A stretch of 64,000 bases of DNA from Phaeosaccion multiseriatum. Its lineage: Eukaryota > Protista > Ochrophyta, other classes. Within the stretch, counting starts at the first letter, position 1, and each line of letters starts with the position of its first letter. The notes under the pieces are model-generated. The model did no database searches and was not told the DNA's origin. It worked only from the letters and a program-made list of their open reading frames with translations. Positions 2,721 through 52,921 of the stretch are shown piece by piece. The translations under genes were made by a program, and so were the position numbers. The DNA is taken from NCBI GenBank assembly GCA_965112735.1, contig OZ218956.1:1054001-1118000 (forward strand). Direction: 5' to 3'.

Positions 2721-4271
2721 GGTGAAGGTTGTAAAGACAGGTGTAAAAGAAGATTCCGTTGGCGGGATAAACAACGGGGAAGACGGGAAGCGACACGGGC
2801 GCCAAGCGGGGCGACATTCAATAGAGGAAGAGTGTGGGAGAAGCAACGACAGGACATTCTGCCCTGCCCACTAAGCCCCCCTCGGTTCCTCCCTTGCTCG
2901 CTCGCACGCCCGCAGGCGCTAACGCACGCACGCACGCACCTGCACGGCTCTTCCCGCCCAGCGCAATCCCCGCCGCAGCGCCGCCCTCTCCCTCTCTGCG
3001 TCGCGATACGAAGCCTGACGAAGACTGCTCCAACTGGAATGACTTCGTCGTATTGGAGCCCCACGCGGAGTCTCCGACGGTTGTAAGGAGTGTGGATCAA
3101 GGGCCCTGACCGATTCTTCAGCACAACCAACGCACCCCTGCCACCAGTCACGCCTTCTCTGAATCGGCTTGGTGAGCCTTGGGCCCGGGAAAGGCTGTTC
3201 CTTCATCGGCACGGGGTCTGAAACTGCAGAGATTCGACTGCTGTTGGCCGTACTGCTGCTCCTCCTTTAAAGCGTGAGGGAGGCTCGTCGATCGAGCTGA
3301 AGGAATAGAACGGACAATGAATAAATAAACACCCTTCCCTTTGGAGGGCGAAGCTTCAGTTTGTGTAAAGTGCTTGCTCCGCGAAGCAGAAACAAACTCC
3401 GTATCTCTATGTCGAGCAATAGCTAGTTGCGTGTGCAAGACTGGTGGCATCTGGCTGACCAACTGACCTAAGGACGTAGCTATGAAGCTGTTGGAGTGGT
3501 GGACAAGGACTTTGATTATCGATTAGCAAAGCACGTCTACGGAAGGGCTGATGAGGACTAAGACTCGGTCAATGAGCAGCTGCTCTGAGATCTGGGCTGA
3601 AGAAAGTCAGCTCAGTCAGAGTAAGCTCAGTTGGCCACCAAGAACTTGTCCATCCCCGCACTGGAAAAGACGACGTACGTGTGTAGCTGAGCTTCACGTG
3701 TGCGTTTCATACACGCACTTCCACACCATGTGTGTTTCGCAATCATACATACCGCTAAGACATTTGTCAGCATCGCTCTTGCCTGTGCAGCTAAAGCTCC
3801 ACGTGTGTGTTTCGTAAGCATCACACACCACTCACTGTACACTCACTGAGGCGAAGGCAAGGAGGAGCTGCATCTCGGCCAGCTGTGGTCGGCCTCTCAG
3901 TTCTCTCCAGGGTTGCTGCTGGTCGCCAGCCAAGTGGGAACACCGCCCGTTTCAACATAGGCCTGACAAGTACGCCTGCCAGGGGGAGAGCGGCAGCCAC
4001 GCCTACGCAAGAAAAACAGTCAGGCCTCCCGGTGGCTGTACTTGCTTCGAGAGCCTACTTGGTCCCAGCCATCTGGCTCTGATCTGTGTGAACTCTCTCC
4101 TGCCGAGTGCCACGGATATGGCTGGTGCGTGCTCTTTGCGTCCCTCTGGTGGGTGAAGTGGCGCACCCGTGATCAAGCTTTCCATTCGCATGGCTTCCAT
4201 GAGGTTCGGAAGAGCCGTCTTCCCGTGCCGTTTAGATAGCAAGCGCTTGATGCAGAACAGCAGCCAACAAG

Positions 4272-35778: not shown

Positions 35779-36876
35779 TTAGGTGAGTTCTTTCCGCCTG
35801 GCGGGAAGGGTCATCTTGTAGCGGGGAGAGGACGGGTCTTGATTGAAGAAAGCCCTAAGCCCTTTCTGTTCAACCTCGCAAGACAAGCACCACTCTGAAT
35901 ACTCGAATCCCCCCTTCCCCTCTCCGATATCGGAGTCTGCCTTTTCACCTTGACAAGCACTCCTCAGCAGGTAAGTCTCGCTGTAAAGTCGCTCGACCTC
36001 CCGTTCGGAGTCATGCACAAGAACGACACTGTCCCCATGGGCCAGACGAGAAGCCATGAAGATGGAACTCATGCGCCCTGGTAAGAGCCAAGAGTAGCGA
36101 GAGAGAGAGAAAAATCACAACGCGATGGACTGGTGTGGGTACTTGGGAAAGCATGAGTGGCGATGGCATGCCAGGTACAGCGAAGATGCATTTCATTCTC
36201 CCGTTCTCCCACCCTCCTTACCTGGTGATTCACTTTTCCAGCCCGTTGGCCCATCCACCAGCACCACGTCCCACTTGTTTGGCTCAGTCACAGACAAGGG
36301 AAGATTGGGAAGATGCAGCTTTTCCTCGTCACCTAGAAGCAGGCGAGCCTGAGAGAGCTGTGTAGAATACTCTATCACGTACACCTCTTTGCAGCCAGCC
36401 TCTCGAGCCATTGCCGCATACTCGGCGTTCTCCTCGAGGATAACCGTTCGCCCTCGACTATTGCCGTGGCACCAGAGAGGAGAGTCATATCCAGCACCCC
36501 AGACGAGGACTCGCGGCTCCGCATAGGATAGAATGGCCCGCATGACCATGTGAACCTCGTCTCTAGACAGTTGAATCTTCCCTTCCGCTGCCTCGTACAA
36601 ATCCATTACTGTGGAAGCCTCTCCTCTGAGCATATCGATCTGGCTCCTGATGGCAGTCTCACACCCCCTGCCCTCTACCCGCCACTTGGAGCAGAAGTGA
36701 GCAGCGACTTTTAGACTGTCGTCACCTGACCATGTCACCATTACAACCGTTGAACTCCCCCCTTCTCCATCCTCCATCTCAACCTCAAAAGCCAGCTCAT
36801 GCCCCCCCCGCCAGGTGGAGCTCGCCGGCCAACAAAGCAAACTGGCAGCGAGCAGAGCAAGCAGCAGCGTCATCAT
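35779..36876 (-). CDS. Secreted DUF579-family (glucuronoxylan 4-O-methyltransferase/GXM-like) polysaccharide methyltransferase
   Basis: Signal peptide MMTLLLALLAASLLCWPASS. Motifs QLSRDE, VLVWGAGYDSPLW, NSRGRTVILEEN, WDVVLVDGPTG...PG|RMSSIF, VLVHDSEREVE match the DUF579 pattern. One intron at ~36078-36221. Confidence 0.85.
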
Positions 36877-38866: not shown

Positions 38867-41800
38867 TCACTTGTACGGTGCCAAAGGCGCAAGGGCCGGC
38901 TGAGCGGCTTGCCACAGCCCTTCCTTGAGCGACTGGGCGAAGCTACTGCTCAGCACCTGCGGGTGCCAAGAGAAGTACTTGTCCAATGCACGGGGCTGCA
39001 GCGGCGGGGCCGACACCATCTCCAGCCACAGAGTCTCATTGCGCGCCACGCTCGCCACCCGCTCAGCACACGCGCGCAATTGACCAGCCACGTCGGCCTC
39101 TCGCCCCCCTTCAGCACCCCCCCCCCCTCCTCCTCCACAGTTTATAAAGGCCGCCGGATTGAAGATGAGGTCGACGTCTGCAGGCCCCCAGTAGACGGGC
39201 ACCGCGGCAGCCAGAAAAGCATTCACAATCTTCTCGGTCCAGTACCCGTCCTGGACGTGACTGTTCTCAAAGGCCACGACGAATCGGTAGGGCTCGTAAG
39301 CCTCCACTGCCGAGTCCAAGTACGTCGAGTCGAAGCGCCCCGCCAGCCTAGGCCCGGCATAAGCGCCATCATCATTCTCGTCCCTTTTGAGGTGATGCTG
39401 CTGCTGCTGCTCCCCCTCCTCTTGCTCGCCTGTGCGGCCACTGCGCTGTCTTTGGCTTCCTCGACACGGCCCGAGTGCATATGTATCCGGCACGAGAGTG
39501 GAAAGCTCATCGAACATGTGCTCACGAATGGAGCGGTCGCAGCGGGAGTAGAGGTAGGCTACATTGCGGCGTTTGAGAGGCAGCACCCGCTGCAGCAAGG
39601 AGTCTCTGGACACCGCAAGGTCAGAGGGAGTATGGACCAACCGTTCCGCGAAGGAGGCTGCCGCCACGGACAGGTGAATGTGCATTGTGCCCCTTGCGCC
39701 ACCACGTGCTGTCGGTGATGCCCCGTCCGCGAATCGGTGCAAAGGAGGAGGGCTGAGAGAGGAATCGCTTGAAGCGTGCAGCACCACAGCCGCTCGGGCG
39801 AAGGAGGACACGTCCCATGGCTCACCGCAGACCATCACCACCAAGGCTTCCGGGTGGTCACGCTCCGCCATGTCCCGCGCCGTTTGCTGGCAATGCGACT
39901 CCCACTGTCCTCCCCCGCAGCCCCCATCCAATGCCGACAGGAGCAGAACGTGCACGTGAATGTGGGGAGGGGGTAGGGGGGGGGGCAGCATCACAACCTC
40001 CATGGAAGGGAAGGCCTCCTGCAGAGTCACTCGAAAGAGACGCGAAAGGTACGAGGCCATTGGGCTCACAGCGACCATGAGGCGCTGTCCCTGCGCCTGC
40101 CGCTGCTGCGGCTGCTGCTGCTGCTGCTCCTCCTGTCCTTTGCGAGCAGATACTGTACCCAGCACACCTCGTCTACCCTTCTTTGCAACAATTTCCTCGT
40201 AAAACTCGGCAACTCGTCCGCAGTAGTGTTGCCAGCTGGCCTCTTCCCACACCCCCTTTCGAGCATTCTCCAGAGCGGTAAGCGAGATATCCTCCTCCTC
40301 CTCCTCCTCCTCCTCCTCCTCCTCCTGAACTCCGCTCCACGCCTTCCCAGCTTCTTGCTCGGCGCTCCTCTCGAGCAGCGGTTGAGTCCCTCTCGTCGTC
40401 TTCTCCAGCACGAGCACCACTGCCGCCGCAATGCGCTCGACAGCCTGTGTCCCTTCGTTTCCGTCCATGACCCCACCTACGGGCTGCCTCGGTCCAGCGC
40501 TTCTCTCCGCTCCTCCTCCCCCCCTGACCAGCACCCCTGCGCCTCGCTTGACGGACTCCTCGTGGCCGCTCGACGCCGTCGCTACCACAGGGGTCCTGGT
40601 CAGCAGTGCTTCCACATTCCCAATGCCGTAGGTTTCCGAGGGGCTCGTGTTGATCATGACGTGGAGACTTGCCAAGAAACTCACGACGTCCTCGGTGCCA
40701 ATGTTGCCGAGAAAGGAGGTGTGGTTTGCAACTCCCAGAGTGATGGCGAGGTCCTTCACAGCAGGGAGGAGGTGTCCTTCCCCAGCCAGCAACAGTTGGA
40801 CCCGCTGACCTCCGCCACCATTGCTGCTGTTCTTCTCCTCCAGCATCTCCATCACTCGCTTGCCCACATGCAGGAACAGTCCAGGACCCTTGGTGCTGTC
40901 GACTCTGCCCAGCATGCCGAGGCGAAAGGCGCCACTCTCATCCTTGGCAGCAGTGAGGCGCGGTAGGTCTGTCAAGACGTCCGCATTGACTGTCAAGACT
41001 GGCGGGTGAATCACCTCCACAGGGCGGCCCAGGCTCTGTAGGTATGGGCCTGTGGCGACAAAGTGTGAGGGGGCCTGGAGATGGGTCGGTCGTAGGGATG
41101 GAGACGCGGGGGGCAGAGCGTCGTATTAAGTAAGGGCTCTGATGGGGAGGTGAGACTCGACACACACACACCACTTACCAGATACACCTCCACGGGGACA
41201 TCGGAGTGCGGGGAAGTGTTCGGGAGCTCCATGACACTGACGGGTACGCCAGCGAGGCGCACGAGTTCGAACAGCACCTTCTGCTCTTCGCTCTCCAAGC
41301 TGTTCGGACCCACTGCGGCGTCGAAATTGAGCAGCGCGCGTAAGACGCCCGACACGCTGTGCAGGCCCTCGCCAGAGAGCTCGTGGAGGAGAGGGTGCAC
41401 CTCAGCTACCGCCTGCTGCTGCTGCTGCTGTTGGTGGTATGAGGTGCCATGGTGGGTCAGAGGATCTCGCCTTCGAAGAAGCTCGAGGAGGTGCCGAGGG
41501 CACGACGGTGAGTAGGACACGAAATGGACAGGGACCATGAGAGCCGTCAGCTCTGCTAGGAGATCCGTCCTCCGCCTCTCGTCTCCGCTGCTGCTGCTGT
41601 TGCTGCTGCTGTCGCCATCACATTCGCCGACTTCAGAGACGAAGAACCACTCCACCTCAAAGGAGGCTCTCGGCAGGTACTTGGTCTGTAGCAGGAAGAG
41701 CTTGTTCTGACTGTGCCCCTCTAGATTGGCTATATTCAGAGGAGGAAGGCAGCAGTGAGAGAAAAATGAGCAACACGTCATCCCGATAGAAGGATTAAAG

Positions 41801-44800
41801 TCACTTGCGCTGAGGCACCTTGCCATCTCTCTCCCTCTCTGTACCACTCTACAACATCGCCCCCTCACCTGAGATGACAGCGATTCGTATGGGGCGATCC
41901 CTAGTCAGGTGGAAGGGCGCCACCTGCTGCCGCGACCACTCACGGGAGGCAGCAGGGACGACATCGATAATGACAGAGGCCTCTGCAAGCTGAAGGACTC
42001 CTGCGTCTTTCCGTCCCGTCCCAGGGGCCACAGGGGGAGTCTCCATCATAACGCGGATGGTGAGCACGTGCGTGCCTGCTCTGATACCGTCCGCGATGAA
42101 AGGAGAAAACGGGATGACGCTGCAGTCCGGCGGCCGCGCTGAGGCAGAGGACTCAATCACGATGCAGGCGTACACTGATGGAACTTCCCCCTGCCCCCCC
42201 CGTCCCACCCCCGCCACTGCTGCTGCTGCTGCTGCTGCTGCTGCAAGTACGTCATCGGTGCCGTCTACATGAAAGTCAACGACAACCTCCGCCACATGCT
42301 CCGACTCCTTCTCCACAATGACCGCCCCTGACGCAGGGGTGGTGATGGTGATGACAGGAAGGGCCTTGACATGAAGCAGCCACTTCGGCGGTTCTTGCTC
42401 AGCATTGTGGGCCAAAGGACGTACTCTGTCACTCTTCGTCTCAGCCGAGCCAGTCACTCTTCTTCCCTGCACTGCCGGCAAGAGGCAAAGCATTCGCTGC
42501 CGCTCACTCCAGTCCGCCACTGGAAGGCTCTCACACCCGTCGTTGCGTTGGGGCCCTTCCGACCCTCCCCCTCTGAGTTCTCCATTGGTTCCACCTTCTC
42601 GGCGGACTTGCAAGTGCCAATGCCGTAGGGAAGGTGGAAGCGCGTAAAGCGGCTGCGTCACTGCTTCCTTAAACGCCTCCGGTTTGGTGGGGTGCAAGTC
42701 GGAGAGGCTGTGGTCCAAGTCCCAGCGCAACCACTTGTCCTCCAGCCAGCGACGCCCTACGTCGTCAGCGTGGGCAAAGGACTCGACCTGCATGGGTTGG
42801 AGAGAGTGATCGTTGAGATGGCGCCATCGTCTACGAAAACAAACCCGTGAGTACGCCACAATGGCGGCAAAGACATTCTCATAGAGCACCGGACGAGGCC
42901 TCAATGAGCAGCAGCAGCAGCAGGAGCATCAGAGCGGCGCACACGCACACGCACCTTCTTGCGAAGCTCCGTCGTTGTGCGGACGTAGCTCAGGTGATGG
43001 CAGATGGCAACTGATGGGTCGATTTCTGCCCCTTCCTGCTGCTCCACGGGTATCCCGGGGCTGACGGTGCAGCTCAATTCACGAGCTCGTATCCACTTAC
43101 AGCGGTAAGGGTCTACAAGCCACAAAATACGGAGGGTTTCCGGGGGTTGTATGGCGATTCGGAAAGACTGTCGGGCATTTCGGGACATGGGGGAAGGAAA
43201 GGGGTACCGAAATTGGCTGAAAGGAGTGAGGGGACGGCACACAACATGGTGGGGAGGACGATCCACCGGGTTCGTTCCGTCTCTCCCTGGCACTCATTTA
43301 ACGCTCCTTACCTTCCAGTATGTGGCCATGGTAGCCTGGAAGAAGGGCACATGCGGGTTCCACGCGGCGAGCACCAGGCCTTTGACGAGGTCAACGGGGT
43401 GCCAGAATTCGTCTGTATCAAGAACAAGAACGCGCAAGCTGCCCCCTTCTCCTTCAGCACCACCCGGCCCCCACCGCGCCTTGGCTTGCTCGTTTCCGTG
43501 TTGTCGCTGCGCCTCTTCAGAGGGCCAGTCGCCGACCTCGAACACCAGTTTGTCGGCAAGCAATCGTCTGCTCCTCCAAGACCCGCCAGTGCGGCGCTTG
43601 CTGCTGTCCGCTAACCCTTCATCAGGAGCGTCGAAGCGTTGCAAGCTCTCGAGAAGACGAATGGTCCCCGAGTTGTCCCTCGCCTGCCCCTTCCACGGCA
43701 TGGCGCTGACCAGGACGAGGACGTGGTCCACAACGAGGGCGACCTCCTCAAGGGTGGCTAGGAGGAGCGCACAGTCATCATACACCAGCATCACGGCCGC
43801 AACCTGCAGCCGATCGTCTCCGCCCAGCCAAGCTGCCACCGGCGGGCTCATAACAGCGCCCATCCAGCCGGAGTGAAACGCATAGTCTTCCTGCAGCTGT
43901 GCTACCGCCGGCTGAGAAGCCCCATATCCTCCGGACGCCGCCTCCTCTGCTTCGAGGCCCAAGTTGAGAAAGAGCAGGTCCGAGTCCAACTGGATAAGCG
44001 CCTTAAGCTGGGCAACATTCAAGCCTCCACCCCACCGATCGAGCCAGAGCATGGGGTAAGAGTCCTGTTCCTGTGCCCTTTCGTCATCGCAGGTCTCTTG
44101 CTCACTTCTGCCCTGCTGCGTCCTTTCCACTCCTTCAGTCTCCTCCTTTCCCGACCCCTCCGGATGCAAGTGGCTGCTGTACTCACCCACATGAAAATGG
44201 TACGGATGGTGCTCAGAAAAGAAGGCTTCCCGGTCTAAAGGGCTGAGGCCTCGGTGACTCTGGAAACCCATGTGGCGGATCCAATCGGCAATCCCCGCTT
44301 GGAAGAGATACCTGTCGTTCAGAGGCCCCAAGGAGGAAAAGGCGGCACCGTCGAAGACGAGAGCAGGGAAAGGCAGAAGCCCCCCGAGGCTCTCCGTGAA
44401 GTAGGGAGCGGGGGGCACCGCGCTTGCTTTCCCCCCCTCCTCTCTTTGCTGGTCTGGCAACTGTGGTACAGCACTGAGAAGCAGAGCACTTCCTCCTTCG
44501 CTTCCGTACTCCAAGCGCTGGGCCTCGTAGGCTTCGAAAATGTCTCTGCTGATGCGGACAAGTCCTGCCTTCGATCCGCCCGCCGCTTCCGGCTTCGCGT
44601 CTAACAGCGGCCCTCGACGTCCGGCTGGCCTCAGCAGAGGCGTGGAAGTAGTAACAACCACGAGTATTGCCCCAGGAGACACGACCGAGGCTGCCCTGTT
44701 CAGAGCACTAGGGTAGCCTTCAAACTCTGGCAGTTCAAGAAAAGTCAGAGAGGGCCAAAGTTCCGTCGAGCCTGCGGAGGATGACGCAAAAGAAGAGCAG

Positions 44801-45374
44801 GAAAGCAGGAGGTCCCAAGCCTCCTTCCTCTCTGCTTGAGACAGTGCATACCCATTGAGGACGACAAGGACGTTAAGCCCAGGGCTTGCGGCATGTCGCA
44901 CAGACGCCTCCAGGGTTTGCGAGAGCGGGGTCAGACGGAAGTCGTGGTATCGAACATCGTTTGCGATACTCAGCACCACGACCCATCTCTCCGCCTGAAA
45001 CGATCCACCTATCCATGCGCAAAAAGGGCGAAGGGGGTGAGTTGGGCGAAACGGAATGGGCAAAGCGAAGTCGGAGAGAAAGAGAAAGGGGGAGGAGAAG
45101 GGAGGTTTGTACCTTCGTCCCGGAGCCCCCTTTCCTCCTCAAAAGAAACGTCTTCTCCAGTCCCCTCAGCTAGAGGGTGCCTTCGCCCATGGGAGTGCTT
45201 GTACCACACCGGAGCGAGGTCCACATCTTGGCGCAGGTTACCCTCCGGCGAACCATCAGCAGTACAAGACGTGCAAGCGCCAGGCTGCAGGAACCACAAC
45301 GAATGCCCTAAGAGAGCAGTCAAGACCGTTCTGAGCAGGGCAGCCCACGGGTAGGAGGGAAGAGGCCTGGCCAT
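38867..45374 (-). CDS. Giant secreted multi-glycosyltransferase: degenerate GT2-like, GT-A (DTDE), Ig-like, GT4 and GT10 (alpha-1,3/4-fucosyltransferase-like) domains
   Basis: One signal peptide at 45374 and ~6 exons. GT2-like: GYPSALNRA, LGPLNDRY. GT-A: VLVLDTDEFW, HHLSYVR. GT4: MLGRVDSTKGP, SETYGIGNVEAL. GT10: AYLYSRC, YRFVVAFENS, GYWTEKIVNAF, VPVYWG. GT4 and GT10 share one uninterrupted 717-aa ORF. Confidence 0.75.
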
Positions 45375-45644
45375 TAACCGCGCTCCCGCCCTGCTCCAAA
45401 TTTTGATCCGTTCAGAAACTTCACATTTATATGCAATGCTCTCTGCTGTGAGTTGGGTTCTTGCTGCTGCTTCACTGCCGCTGCTGCTGCTGTGTATCAG
45501 GATCTATTGTCCTCGCCTCTTACTGTGAAAGAGAAATGAAGAGAAGGACGATCGAAGGACAGTTGGGAAAAGCATGACAGTTGGTTCTCCGATCGTACTT
45601 ACAGTTGGCGATTGTTGCTGGGAGAGGGGAAGTGTTTCCCGGCG

Positions 45645-48600
45645 ATGAGGAGAGCTTCCTCACCGGCAACAGCAGCAGCCCTTTCAGGAAGCAGAAGATT
45701 CCTGGTCACTCGAGTGAGCGCTGGGGGTCCGCAGCTTTCAAGAAAGAGGAGGAGGAACGGCGCGGTGCCCAGTCCCTGTGGCACTGCCTGCTCCGGAATT
45801 GATGCGTGGAGGAGCAGAGTCGGAGCGTGTGGGAGGGGTCTGCTGTCCCTGGGTCAGCGTGACTATCACCAGCAGCATGCTGCTCGGACTCAGACGGGGG
45901 GGAGGGGGGGGCGGCGTGAGGCTCAGGCGCAAGACCAGGACTCATGGCGCGAGAGGTGGAGCAGGGTCATGCGGACGAAGCAGGGCAAAGCGAGGCAGCA
46001 GGAATTGGTCAAGGAGATCGGATTGCTAGGCCGCAAAGGTAGGCTGCAGGATCTTCGCTGCTTGGTGGAGCAGGCTGAATCAGAAATCTGGGTTGGGGCG
46101 AGTGTGGAGAAGGGGAGAGGTGGGTTCGAGAGAGGAAGGCTCTCTGGCCCTGAATGGAATGCTTACGTGTACAACGCCATTATCTCTGCATATGGGCGTT
46201 GCGGACAGTGGCGTGAGGCTGTGGCCGTTCTCACCAAGATGACAGGCTCTGGAGTCACGCCGGACATTGTAAGTGAGACGCGGACGAGGGAGGGGGGGGA
46301 GGCAGGGCTTTGTGGGTCGCAGTAGAGCGCATCCGACGTTCAGGTAGGGGGAGTCTTACCAAGGCCTCGCCCTCTTAATCGAGTCCTTTCAGATCTCTTA
46401 CAACTCGGCCATCGCTGCCTGCGCCAAGGCCGGTCAACATGTCTTGAGCCTGTCGCTCATGAAGAGGGCCGAGCGAGGCGGCCTCGTTCCAGACGTGTTC
46501 ACCTACAACGCTTGCATAAATGCGTGTGCCAGGTACGGACGGAGTCTCCTGTATTGTTGTTTCTCTTTCTTGTTTGTATGGTACACCACTGCATGCCCAT
46601 GGGTGCCCGCTGACGTACAAACACACGTCCTTCCTTCCTTGCGAAAGGTACGGGCAGCAGGCGCAGGCGGAGTCCGTCTTCCGCGCGATGCAGCAGCAAG
46701 GAGTCGCTCCCGACGCCATTACCTTCAGCTCTCTTATGAAGGTGCACAACCGCGCCATGGACTTTGACGCAACGCTTTCCCTGCTTCGCTCTATGAATGC
46801 CGAGGAAGCAGAGCCGACGGGGGGAAGGGAAAGGGGGGACCAGGGCAGCAATGCCGGAGCGAAAGCAGACGCCCACTGCTACAGCGCAGCAATGGATGCC
46901 TGCGCTGGGCTGGGGGACCCAGAGAGAGCCGAGGTAGGTGCCTTTGCTCCTTCCCCCGATCGCGGGCACTGCTTACCTCCGTTGCGTTCGGATTGGATCT
47001 CTGATCCAGTTGTGAGTCCGTCCAGAGAGAGGTGCACGGAATCTTTTGCCCTGGTCATGTGATGTTTAGTCTGTTTGTGGGTATTAAGCCTCTTTTGACC
47101 TGGGCCCGCCTGATCTCAGCCGCTCTCCCCCCAACGTATGCTGCGAGACAAGGCCCTGCTCGACGAGATGCGCCGCGTCGGATTGGAGCCCACGGTGCAG
47201 TGCTACAACATCGCTATGAAGGCCTTCGCTGACGAGGGGAATACAGGCAGGACAGTACAGGTGACAGTCGAGAGGCACTACTCACGAGGAATGAGATGAA
47301 TCGTGGAGGTCGATTACGCGCATTCGGGCAGGATAGGAAAACAACTCTCACTCTCACACACACACTTCAATGCGTGCCTCCGCCCCGTGCTCCTATGTCG
47401 GTGTCCCGCGCAGCTGCTGCACGACATGTTGGACGCAGACACAGCGGTGCGGCCCGACGTTGTGAGCTACAACACCGCACTGCTGGCGCACTCGGTGGCC
47501 GTTCGGATGGAGATGTCTGCATCGTCGTGGTCGGGGTCGTTGGGGGAGACGAGGCAAAGCGTTGAAGTGGGGGGTGGCGAGGACGCGGAAGGCGCCCAAC
47601 GCGTGCAGAGGAGAGACGGCTGCGCTCGGCTAGTGGGGTGGATGGTCGCGATGCTTCAGAGCATGGAGAAGGGCGGTACAGGTAAGAGCAAAGCGCCTGC
47701 AGCAGGGTGTGGTTCAGCAGCAGCGGCTCTCGTCCTCTGTACTCAGCTTGTGTATCCTTTCCTCCCCCCCCGTCTGTTCTGGATTTCCGACACGAGAGAA
47801 GGGCGTGTGCGACCTAATGCGGTATCCTATGGAACCACAATGTCTGCCTGCGCGCGCGCGGGTGACGCTGTGTCTGCCCTGCAGCTACTGGACGTCATTG
47901 CTCGACATCCTGAGGTGGACGTGGATGAAAAGATGTATTGTGCGGTCATCTCCGCCTGTGCCAAGGTGAGGAGAAGTGAAAAGATGCGGGGGATGGGCCG
48001 GAACTCTCGGCTTTGTGCAGAGTCTGAAGGAGAAGTCCCTTAGGTCGAAGAATAGACGGACAGGCGGACGACAGTACACTCGAACTTGTGGAGCTGCATG
48101 AAGGCGGGATGCACGCTCAAACTGTCTCTCCCCCCCCCTCCCCGCCCGTGATGCTCTGGCAACCCTCTTCCCCTCCGACATCCTTTCTGTGGCCGCGAGA
48201 GTGCAGGCAGGGCGCTTGACATCGGCCCTGGATTTGCTGCAAGAAATGCGCGAAGGGGGGAGGCCTCCAGTCCGCTCCCAACACGTGGGAAGACAACAAG
48301 GGCAGAGAACAGCGCAAGGGAAGCATGGCAAGCCACTGAGGCCCAATGCACACTGCTATGCTGCTGCGATTTCGGGCTGTGCCGCGACTGGCGACCTCGA
48401 GCAAGCCCTCACACTGCTTCAAAGGTGCGATGCTGAGCTCATTTTTGACACACCGGGGAGGAGGGGGGTGAGGAGTGGGGGATTATACCTGCTAAGCTGA
48501 CCATCCCCTTTTCTGCGTACAGGATGCAAGACGACGGCTTACAAGCAGACACAGCGTGCTACAACGCTGCCATCACTGTGTGCAGGGTCGGGCGGCAGTG

Positions 48601-49714: not shown

Positions 49715-52700
49715 TCAGCCCTCAGCACAGGGTCGGCGCCCAATCTCCACATGACGGTAGAAGCTCTCGAGCCTGTCCTTCGCCCGTGCGTAGCCCCTCA
49801 TGGCGTCGCTCTGCGCTGCTCGGCCGAGTCTCTCGCTCAGGTCGCCTCCCTCCAGCAGACTCTCCAGGGCGTTGGCCAGGGCCAGCGGGGTGGGGAGCGG
49901 GACCAACAGGCCATTCTCTCTGTGCCGGATAAGCTCTGCTGCTCCTCCGAAGCCGAAGGTAACGACGGGAAGGCCTTGGGACATGGCCTCTGGTCCCACC
50001 TGCAGGCAGTCGAGAAAGGACGGAGGGAGAGGGAGGGGATTAAATAAGCGTCAGTGATGGCGACTTGGAAATCAAGGCCAGGCAGGGTAGAGAAGAATAG
50101 AGACACGCGCTCTGAGACAGAGCACACTCACCATTCCAAAGGTTTCGCAGCCGAGGGACGGAAAGACCAAAGCCAAGACGTCGGATGTGAGTATGGCGTG
50201 GTGCACTCGGTCTGAGGGGACATAGCCCCCGAAGGTCACGTTGGCTTGCATCTGCAGCGCGAGACGTCGCATCTGCGGCAAGATTGATCCGCTGCCAATG
50301 AGGACACCATGGGCAGACGGATGGTCCTCGTTCAGTATGGCCATCGCCCTGACGAACATTCCTGGGCCTTTCTCCCCTGACAAGCGTCCAAAAAAGACAA
50401 AGTGGGTCCAAGGCGGTATGACCCACCGCTCAGCCCTGTCCCTCGGGGCATCGCCAGAGACTTCACTGCGGTGCCCCCTCCTTCCACCTCCTCTAAGCGC
50501 CATGAGAGGGGGGAGGATAAACACTGGCCTCTTGAAGTTGCCGACGAGCTTCACGTAGCTGGAAGGGGAAACCAACGCCGTGAACGCCTCGATGGAGGCA
50601 GTCGTGCCGCCGCTGTTGCCCCCATCCGACGCTGGGGGCCGGGCTCCTACGTCAAGAATTCGCGCGTCGACCCCAGCGAGTCTAGCCACCTGCACAAGGT
50701 ATGCGTCGTTTCCCCCTGGGGCAGTCACTCCAGGGCCGTTGGCCATGACAAGAATATCAAAGCTCGACAGCACGTCATACAGACCTTGCAGGCCCTGTCG
50801 CAAGGTGTCGTCCACGCCGCTGACAACGTCCCACGAAGGAGACGTGTGAAGCACACTGTGTACGTAAGCATGCACTCCAAGCCCTCGCGAGGAGGCATGC
50901 TCCGCGACTACGGAGTCCAGCTCGGTGCAGTACTTCACCACATGAAGACTTGGAGCTTTGACCCCTTCAAAGAGCTTCAACTTCTCTCGCACCATTCTCT
51001 CCAGGGGTCTCAGATGCTCTGCCGCACTCCGCGCTTCCTCCTCCTCCTCTTGCCTGCAATATCCACCATCCAACGCAGAGCCCTCTGGGGCACAGGCACC
51101 ATCAGAGACTATACCAGGACCGACAGCGCTGCTGACGTCTCTCCTGTCACCGGACTCGTCGGTATCGACACGGGACTCATCCTTCCAGCACGACAGGTCC
51201 AAAAGGGTCACTTCAAAGCTACCTGTCCCTGCCAAAAGCACAGCCTGGTTTAAGAAGTTCACCTTTACCCCATCCACAGAGCCCAGATCAAATATATACA
51301 CGATGCTCCTCAGAGATGGAGGCCCTTCCAGGGTGCAGTGCTCGATATCGGAGTCCGAGATGGGCTCTTCCACCAGCGCCTCGAGTGTGCTGAGAGCGGC
51401 AGTTTGGGACGGAGAGCGAGAGAGTACGATACTTTCGTCGGGGGTATACACCTCCAGCGATACGTACATGGAGGGCACATCGTCGCAGCACACAAGCTCT
51501 CCGCTCTCTGCGTCCTCCCGGGCCTCTGAGGTGAGCCCACAAAGGAAGCATGCCTCCACACTGAGAGAGCCATAGACGCCCTTGGTGCTGATGGCCGCTC
51601 CCACGCGGAAAGCCTCTGACACGCTGAGCACCTGTGGGTACGCATTGTTCAGCGTAACTCGAATCAAAGAAGAGGGCATGGTGGGCACGGGTGCTTGGCT
51701 CTCGTGCATGGCACATAGACTGATGCGCATTGCATCATTTCTGCCGTTGATGATGGCGCCATCCTGGTTGCCGGGCTGGGCCGTGGGCGCTTCCCCCTGG
51801 TGGCCATCCCTGCCCCCTTCTACTCCATCAGCCCCCCCCCCCCTCGCGGGGTCCCAATGCAGCAACCGTGGCGAGAGTAAAGGAAGTTCGAGGCGCGTAG
51901 TGCCTCCCGCTGCGGTGCAGGTCACTTCCAGTGAAGTGAGACGTATGCGCTGCCACACTGATGGGCCTTCCCCCTGCCCGTGGGCAGAAATAACTTTGGT
52001 GAAGCCCTCGAAGCCCTCCAAAGCATCGACCTCCGCACTGCGATTTTCAAAGCTCACGAGATACACACCCGTCATCCCGTAGGGCCTCTCGAAGTCGTGC
52101 AGAGGGCGTACCACCACCATCCAGCAGGGGCGAGCAGTGTGTCTCCACAGCACGCGTAGTGCCCTCGCCGCACCACATCCTCCTTCATCAGCAGCAAGCG
52201 CACACCTATCTTCAGTCTCGGTATCGTCCCAGTCGCTGGCCGAGTGCAGGATGTAGCTTCCCACGCATTTGGTCAACGGAGGAGTGAGCGAGGGCGAAGG
52301 GTGCAGAGCCACAGACTCGCAGGGAGGACACCGCACCGAAACTTGGCGGTGGACACGCAGAAATCCCTGAGGCTCGTGGGGTTCGCTCCCCTCTGCCAGT
52401 TCCCAATGAATCAACCAGCCCCAGCTCCTCCTTGGCGGCTGTGTGGCGCCATCCTCTGTGGAAGCCCCTCTCCAATCCCACCCTGCCTCATTCTTCCGCG
52501 TCTCGTGCTCGTATGGAGAGACCGGCACGTAAGCTAAGACGTGTTCTTCATCGTTGCGCCCCCCTCCTGTATCGGGTCTGGGCAATGTGATGACCCAGGC
52601 ATCTGTCCCCGTGGAGAGAAGTGCGCGGTGGAGCTGCAAAACAGACCGATCGCCAACATCCGCCCCCACCCACCTTCCCTCGGAAGACATTGCGTACCCC

Positions 52701-52921
52701 CCAGAGAGGAAGTCTCCCAACCCCTCCACCTGCACTATACCGCAGGGAAGGTCCGGAGAAGGGCGGCCTGGGAACGACTCCCACGCCCGAGCTGCGGCAC
52801 CCGAGGTGAGCGGCACCTCCAGGTAACCCACCGACGGAGGAGCAGCTTGTGCCTGTGTGGCGAGAAGACCCAGCAGGACGAGGGATGCGCGGACTCCCAT
52901 CCTGAAGTAGGGCACAGCCAT
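49715..52921 (-). CDS. Secreted GT4-family (GT-B) glycosyltransferase with a large N-terminal region
   Basis: Signal peptide ASLVLLGLLATQAQA. Motifs FFGRLSGEKGPG, FPSLGCETFGM|VGPEAMSQGLPVV, ELIRHRENGLLV. One intron at ~50000-50130. Confidence 0.88.

Follow-up and report, generated by a model that had tools for sequence, protein, structure and literature searches.

A six-exon gene of the ochrophyte Phaeosaccion multiseriatum predicted to encode a multi-glycosyltransferase of the secretory pathway

Introduction

Does a single gene of the ochrophyte Phaeosaccion multiseriatum encode a protein that carries four glycosyltransferase (GT) domains and, if so, what could such a protein do? The question is raised by positions 38867 to 45374 of the window, by which we mean the whole stretch of 64,000 nucleotides that was analyzed (contig OZ218956.1 of assembly GCA_965112735.1, positions 1,054,001 to 1,118,000), a locus within a 67-Mb, 22-contig genome whose G+C content reaches ~58-60% around the gene. 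Our analysis indicates that the locus very probably holds one gene rather than several, and that its predicted product carries two N-terminal domains of GT-A type, a beta-rich spacer, a GT4 domain and a GT10 domain. We consider it rather probable that this product is a secretory-pathway multi-glycosyltransferase in which three active domains would act in turn on one acceptor, a reading that draws on conserved motifs, on modeled folds and on analogy with a viral enzyme.

One gene of six exons

On the minus strand, which carries all the features of the gene, direct reading of the junctions gives a chain of long open frames of alternating phases from an ATG at 45374 to a stop at 38867-38869. The six exons comprise 5,850 nt, which give 1,949 codons, with consistent phases and no internal stop, and two codons are split by introns, each of which adds one residue. 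Exon 1 (45374-45113, 87 in-frame residues, donor AAG/GTACAA) holds the start codon and an N-terminal hydrophobic stretch; exon 2 (45008-43312, 565 in-frame residues) holds GT-A domain 1 and the N-terminal part of GT-A domain 2; exon 3 (43167-42955, 71 residues, 213 nt) supplies the middle of domain 2 with a conserved H-H-L-S-Y-V-R motif; exon 4 (42787-41869, 306 in-frame residues, donor CAG/GTGAGG) supplies the end of domain 2 and the spacer together with the initial strand of GT4; exon 5 (41729-41179, 183 in-frame residues) encodes the predicted N-terminal Rossmann half of GT4; and exon 6 (41074-38867, 735 in-frame residues, stop included) encodes the C-half of GT4, a linker and GT10. The introns are all of GT-AG type and measure 104-167 nt (104, 144, 167, 139, and 104 nt in order), with the donors GTACAA, GTAAGG, GTGCGT, GTGAGG, and GTAAGT and acceptors that all end in AG; such short GT-AG introns point to a native eukaryotic gene.

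All searches and folds were made exon by exon. Exon 3, which is invisible in a plain list of open reading frames (ORFs), was revealed by tblastn with four homologues (P0001, P0165, P0166, and P0003), the first of which is protein CAM9158120.1 of Chrysoparadoxa australica. By blastp, residue 565 of exon 2 aligns to residue 514 of P0001 and residues 1-71 of exon 3 to its residues 515-579; residue 579 pairs with the end of exon 3 and residue 580 with the first residue of exon 4. At the exon 5/exon 6 join, residue 183 of exon 5 corresponds to P0001 942 and residue 1 of exon 6 to P0001 943, and the join falls on adjacent residues in P0003 (498/499) and P0005 (861/862) as well, exon 5 being aligned to P0001 820-942, P0003 376-498, and P0005 707-861. 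Furthermore, residues 402-565 of exon 2, the whole of exon 3 and residues 1-55 of exon 4 follow one another directly within a single intron-free ORF on two marine metagenome contigs; in L016, the matching segments lie at 2346-2756, 2757-2996, and 2997-3161 (ORF L016:1266-4433), with 60% identity over the exon 4 residues. The exon 4/exon 5 join is drawn from its GT-AG ends, from its phase (a phase 1 codon whose other two bases open exon 5) and from the motif R-I-A-V-I-S (41869-41887, direct reading), the first GT4 strand, which ends exon 4, the remainder of the predicted GT4 N-half being encoded by exon 5.

The boundaries between domains are all found inside exons (GT-A1/GT-A2 in exon 2, GT-A2/spacer/GT4 in exon 4, GT4/GT10 in exon 6), and the introns checked by homology all lie inside domains. 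Since introns split both GT-A2 and GT4, separate transcripts would each hold broken domains. A first, sequence-only reading of this DNA had proposed one polypeptide of about 1,900 residues with four GT-fold domains, and had doubted the joins near 42.9 and 41.8 kb. The polypeptide is borne out by the 1,949 codons, the six consistent exons and the homologue-matched joins; the doubted joins are real and are located inside GT-A domain 2 and inside the N-half of GT4, and those near 42.9 kb agree with the homologues residue for residue. The direct GT4-GT10 fusion that it had claimed also holds, the C-half of GT4 and GT10 sharing an uninterrupted exon of 735 codons.

The GT4-GT10 core

GT4 enzymes are retaining glycosyltransferases and GT10 enzymes are inverting alpha-1,3/4-fucosyltransferases. 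Pfam matches are confined to exon 6, exons 2-5 giving none at E up to 10. The C-terminal half of GT4 (40400-41074, exon 6 residues 1-225) matches PF00534 with 56.6 bits (cut-off 26.4, E 2.9e-15) and PF13692 with E 2.3e-13 over residues 52-184, and its EX7E motif (40610-40636) reads S-E-T-Y-G-I-G-N-V-E in the translation (exon 6 residues 146-155). The Pfam GT4-conflict profile starts at position 151 in exon 6, so that an N-half is expected upstream. Exon 5 (41179-41729) gives no match by itself in Pfam or in PDB sequences; its alignment with P0001, P0003, and P0005 covers the stretch that directly precedes their GT4 Pfam match.

A linker of low complexity (40085-40399), in which a poly-Glu run and Gln runs occur, leads to the GT10 domain (38867-40084, exon 6 residues 331-735 and stop). 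The coding runs for poly-Glu and poly-Gln match dozens of simple-repeat sites genome-wide. The GT10 domain matches PF00852 with 42.7 bits (cut-off 23.9, E 6.5e-11, exon 6 residues 589-646) and carries F-E-N-S...G-Y-W-T-E-K at 39230-39271. A phmmer comparison with the Helicobacter pylori enzyme 2NZW (E 3e-07) finds R195, Y246, E249, and K250 all identical, residues that bind GDP-fucose in HpFucT within the motif F-x-F-E-N...Y-x-T-E-K. In a 13-sequence alignment of the clade, F, E, G, Y, T, E, and K are invariant, and the profile of these 13 sequences matches GT10 structures only, 2NZW (E 6e-25) first and then 5ZOI, 7YRO, FUT9, and plant FucTA. The donor-binding motif and its four residues are as in H. 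pylori 2NZW, human FUT9 (8D0O), and plant FucTA (9S6A); in contrast, these three are single-domain enzymes, and the acceptor half of the algal domain is unaligned by sequence and holds low-complexity inserts. A nearly invariant G-E pair of the clade (exon 6 residues 417-418) is a candidate for the site of the catalytic-base Glu.

Two N-terminal GT-A domains and a spacer

The protein begins with a hydrophobic stretch (residues about 11-29, maximal 19-residue Kyte-Doolittle mean of 1.46), interpreted as a signal peptide or as a signal anchor encoded by exon 1. GT-A domain 1 follows (43822-44994, exon 2 residues 5-395, residues about 93-483 of the protein). It has no Pfam match even at E 10, the GT2 profile included. 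Exon 2 was folded by AlphaFold2 on a five-sequence alignment, which yielded a mean predicted local distance difference test (pLDDT) score of 60.8 and long disordered inserts, and the model places domain 1 in the GT-A fold: the best VIA-align match is 6yv7_A (Z 13.3, root-mean-square deviation [rmsd] 3.9 A, 215 residues aligned), and the 50 listed matches all have the GT-A or a related fold. The matches at Z 13.3-10.3 are to GT2/GT27-type GT-A enzymes, and the fold matches include PcManGT, BcsA, ppGalNAc-transferases, WrtF, TarP/TarS, and CHSY3-CHPF. The domain was earlier described as GT2-like and degenerate, and it is indeed so: T-T-S (44644-44661) stands in place of DxD, and L-N-G (A-N-G in three homologues) is found where GT2 enzymes carry D-D-G. 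Both DxD and the usual nucleotide-binding Asp are gone in all four homologues compared, P0001, P0165, and P0166 among them. At most three domains of the protein therefore look catalytic, and domain 1 is probably a conserved, non-catalytic pseudo-glycosyltransferase. Comparison of domain 1 with domain 2 by hhalign gives a match probability of 0.1%, and a tandem duplication is not indicated.

GT-A domain 2 was likewise correctly recognized as a second GT-A domain with D-T-D-E. Its N-terminal part (43312-43809, exon 2 residues 400-565) shows V-Y-D-D after the first strand and DxD at 43411-43419, and its C-terminal part (42458-42787, the first ~110 residues of exon 4) is conserved in P0001, P0003, P0165, P0166, and in L015-L026. 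The motifs D-T-D-E-F-W, W-x-S-E-x-x-Q-R-x-x-G, and L-V-x-D-x-D-E-F-W are invariant. Folded alone with AlphaFold2 as an N-terminal fragment of 176 residues (pLDDT 72.4) and compared with 48,161 chains in a search independent of Foldseek, the domain retrieved almost exclusively nucleotide-diphospho-sugar transferases among its top 50 matches (Z 8.8-6.4), including IspD, MGS, EXTL2, BcsA, ArnC, hyaluronan synthases, SunS, GtrB, and DPMS. The ESM Atlas gives a weak pointer to GT2, and a viral relative of the domain has a sub-threshold match to PF13704 (16.6 bits, E 0.011). A profile of the N-terminal module searched against PDB sequences found a single chance match to an ion channel (E 0.79), and a scan of bacterial and archaeal genomes found no relatives of domain 2. 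In view of its motifs and modeled fold, we describe domain 2 as an unclassified DxD GT-A domain.

Between domain 2 and GT4 lies a beta-rich spacer (41918-42370, exon 4 residues ~140-290) that contains an Ala run. Pfam and PDB sequence searches with exon 4 gave no match for it, and the ESM Atlas offers weak leads to Big_7 and DUF4399 (scores 0.84-0.88); the label of Ig-like module given to the spacer in the sequence-only reading stands as a lead only.

Relatives and modular shuffling

A HMMER search of 1.8 billion representative proteins gave 4,146 matches at E up to 0.001, the best of which reaches only 190 bits and 41% identity, so that the protein of this genome itself is not in the searched library. 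The named best matches all come from ochrophytes or oomycetes. Among 164 proteins examined, most match GT10 only; the match takes in the GT4 part too in about a dozen cluster representatives. The full architecture is found in C. australica CAM9158120.1 (1,514 residues), collinear from exon 2 onward with GT-A1, GT-A2, spacer, GT4, and GT10 at a local identity of 30-40%; it is shorter by 435 residues, with linkers and inserts of smaller size, and is annotated as an unnamed protein. The predicted protein CAM9252953.1 of Discosporangium (1,001 residues) starts inside GT-A2 and shows the same order onward. The other stramenopile proteins named fucosyltransferase share the C-terminal GT4-GT10 (or GT10) cassette and have the same GT10 clade among their best matches, whereas their N-terminal partner varies, being absent, a GT31 domain, or the double GT-A module of the present gene. 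GT4-GT10 is seen in the pelagophyte Chrysophaeum taylorii (KAJ8614054.1) and as fragments in the raphidophyte Heterosigma akashiwo, GT31-GT4-GT10 in the bolidophyte Triparma laevis (GMH62360.1), and GT31-GT10 in oomycetes. The double GT-A module joined to GT4-GT10 is common to the present gene, Chrysoparadoxa and, in part, Discosporangium only. Conversely, the GT-A1/GT-A2 cassette occurs without GT4-GT10 in a Phaeothamnion protein of 1,934 residues, in a metagenome protein of 1,305 residues and on several marine contigs. In this distribution, GT-A1/GT-A2 and GT4/GT10 behave as two cassettes that are shuffled among stramenopile glycosylation genes.

The genome of P. multiseriatum carries one copy of the N-terminal cassette and has Pfam GT10 matches at about four places; tblastn detected no GT4 exons upstream of three of the other GT10 matches in the ranges searched. 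Word-indexed protein searches with exon 6 and exon 2 returned nothing within a length window that left out the long relatives, and the exon 6 search was probably swamped by low-complexity words.

Some environmental relatives of domain 2 show further combinations. The L016 ORF (contig Ga0114994_10002793, 1266-4433), an intron-free frame of 1,056 residues from a GC-rich marine eukaryote, joins a GT-A2 relative to a Glyco_trans_1_2-like C-terminus and has a DDX23-type helicase gene and a cyclophilin-RING gene as neighbors. Two viral ORFs from IMG/VR (L033:2989-4398 and L032:1397-2977; one of the contigs measures 169 kb) begin with ~130 residues of weak similarity to domain 2 (24-28% identity); in one ORF this region is fused with a methyltransferase of class I, in the other with a GT2 domain recognized by Pfam.

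What had already been described of this architecture? Mazeas et al. (2024) judged brown-algal GT10 an unlikely fucan synthase and set it aside as a fucan candidate partly for its low copy number; the main text does not mention the fusion (PMC11468063). The CAZy-curated supplementary table of the same work records "GT4-GT10" for C. australica (prot_C-australica_Contig_35.14.1) and "GT10-GT4 ... splicing problem" for Saccharina japonica (PMC11468063). The former entry is probably CAM9158120.1, of which the table recognizes GT4-GT10 only. A full-text literature search found no paper naming GT4-GT10, GT10-GT4, GT31-GT10, or GT31-GT4. The sequence-only reading had left room for the architecture being common and already described: this is true of GT4-GT10, which is common in ochrophytes and present in the curated table, and not of the two N-terminal GT-A modules, which are unrecognized in that table and of which no member has been studied. 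The gene is a member of an uncharacterized, publicly deposited and essentially undescribed family, and the novelty of the present analysis lies in having recognized both N-terminal GT-A modules and the shuffling of the cassettes.

Discussion

The gene structure, the folds and families of the domains and the conserved donor-binding motifs are what the analysis shows, and the function that we favor may be pictured as follows. The protein would enter the secretory pathway, probably the Golgi lumen, by means of its N-terminal signal or anchor. Domain 1, which probably no longer binds a nucleotide sugar, could serve as a scaffold or as a module that holds the acceptor, while GT-A2 (metal-dependent through its DxD), the retaining GT4 and the inverting GT10 would act successively on the same acceptor, presumably the glycan of a glycoprotein or a side chain of a matrix polysaccharide. 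Up to three different sugars might be added in this way, one of them an alpha-linked fucose taken from GDP-fucose; tethering would hold each intermediate near the next active site, and the acidic, Gln-rich linker between GT4 and GT10 is likely to be flexible. The closest known analogy is the chlorovirus PBCV-1 protein A111/114R, a three-domain glycosyltransferase for which three successive activities have been proposed, including that of a fucosyltransferase (PMC7826918). The two have in common several GT domains per chain, a fucosyltransferase among them and a proposed successive addition of sugars to one glycan, and the present gene holds at least two GT domains with intact motifs (GT-A2, GT4, GT10), as in the A111/114R type. 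The viral protein differs in that it works outside the ER-Golgi pathway with domains of ~300 residues from other families, and no sequence relationship between the two was detected.

Several points speak against this three-enzyme proposal. The gene model was drawn from genomic sequence and homologues, and the evidence on its product is exon-wise; the exon 1/exon 2 join, for which another donor of the same phase exists near 45245, is given by GT-AG ends and phase and is the sole join without support from homologues. The hydrophobicity of the N-terminus is only moderate and the call of a signal or anchor comes from hydropathy. The fold Z-scores of domain 2 are in the middling range of the tool, Foldseek returned generic Rossmann folds for the domain 2 fragment (best E 0.013), and neither Pfam (E up to 10) nor PDB sequence and profile searches matched this domain. 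The N-terminal acceptor half of GT10, where the catalytic-base Glu is located, was aligned to no solved GT10. Finally, according to a 2026 review, no glycosyltransferase that makes fucose-containing glycans is yet characterized among the brown-lineage algae (PMC13380512).

A different division of labor is conceivable, in which GT4-GT10 would be a bifunctional enzyme and both N-terminal GT-A domains would be non-catalytic, with a role in scaffolding, dimerization or glycan binding. The loss of DxD and of the nucleotide-binding Asp from domain 1 in all homologues fits such an arrangement, as does the fact that neither N-terminal domain matches a Pfam GT model and that many relatives work with GT4-GT10 alone. 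We nevertheless hold it to be unlikely, because the D-x-D-E-F-W and V-Y-D-D motifs of domain 2 are invariant across ochrophyte, metagenomic, and viral relatives, a conservation that is hard to account for without catalysis.

The sequence-only reading had gone further and suggested a processive enzyme, whose fused domains would alternate and build a repeating fucosylated polymer as the bifunctional bacterial capsule synthases do. Several catalytic domains per chain would suit a polymerase, and the two-domain GT-A polymerases K4CP (2z86), PmHS2 (8viw), and CHSY3-CHPF are among the fold matches of exon 2; however, these matches reflect the shared GT-A fold only, the rmsd across both domains being 10-14 A. 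Hydropathy reveals neither a transmembrane channel nor another polymerase feature, nothing being hydrophobic beyond the N-terminus and the Rossmann strands. The GT4-GT10 core has different N-terminal partners or none, which fits a step-wise decoration better than a fixed repeat, and it is present in the pelagophyte Chrysophaeum, a member of a class reported to lack fucans (PMC11468063); the varied partners and this pelagophyte occurrence both point to modular decoration rather than to a processive repeat. Nothing supports this part of the earlier reading, be it processivity or a repeating product; no hallmark of processivity was seen in the sequence, and a polymerase seems to us quite improbable.

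Lastly, that an N-terminal GT-A gene and a neighboring GT4-GT10 gene were mistakenly read as one is highly improbable: it would agree with a model built from genomic sequence and with the separate occurrence of both parts in other organisms, but exon 4 spans the end of GT-A2, the spacer and the first GT4 strand in one open frame, introns lie within domains and none between them, and the same order is found in a single predicted protein of Chrysoparadoxa and of Discosporangium.

Returning to the successive action of GT-A2, GT4, and GT10, the GT10 domain of several ochrophytes appears as the last module of large fused enzymes whose partners include a conserved GT-A domain that is unknown to Pfam and unrecorded in the CAZy-curated table. 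The gene offers concrete constructs to express, and from the fixed order of its domains one can predict in what order the sugars of the product follow each other. It is tempting, though we regard it as unlikely, to hypothesize that the double GT-A cassette represents one or two new GT families, confined to ochrophytes, certain other marine eukaryotes and a small number of large viruses, and that the whole protein is a self-contained synthase of a lineage-specific fucosylated glycan. If so, its product might be, e.g., the primer or a branch of those matrix polysaccharides that contain fucose.

Neighboring genes in the window

The window is rich in genes that modify glycans. On the minus strand, an ORF with an IRX15/IRX15L/GXM domain (a DUF579-type polysaccharide methyltransferase, 36196-36876, E 1.3e-19) is located some 2 kb away from the large glycosyltransferase gene, on its 3' side, and three sugar methyltransferase genes are found at 8.3-15.6 kb. 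A second large gene of the minus strand, the GT4 gene of the 50-53 kb region (49724-52921), has an open frame of 949 codons (50075-52921) that ends in a GT4 C-half (PF00534, E 2.6e-10), preceded by ~840 residues with no Pfam match; the similarity to GT4 runs on to about 49724, past a likely intron. Between the two large genes, a pentatricopeptide-repeat gene with several PPR matches (45612-48043, plus strand) stands head to head with the glycosyltransferase gene, and the spacing of only about 240 bp between their frames suggests a shared bidirectional promoter region.

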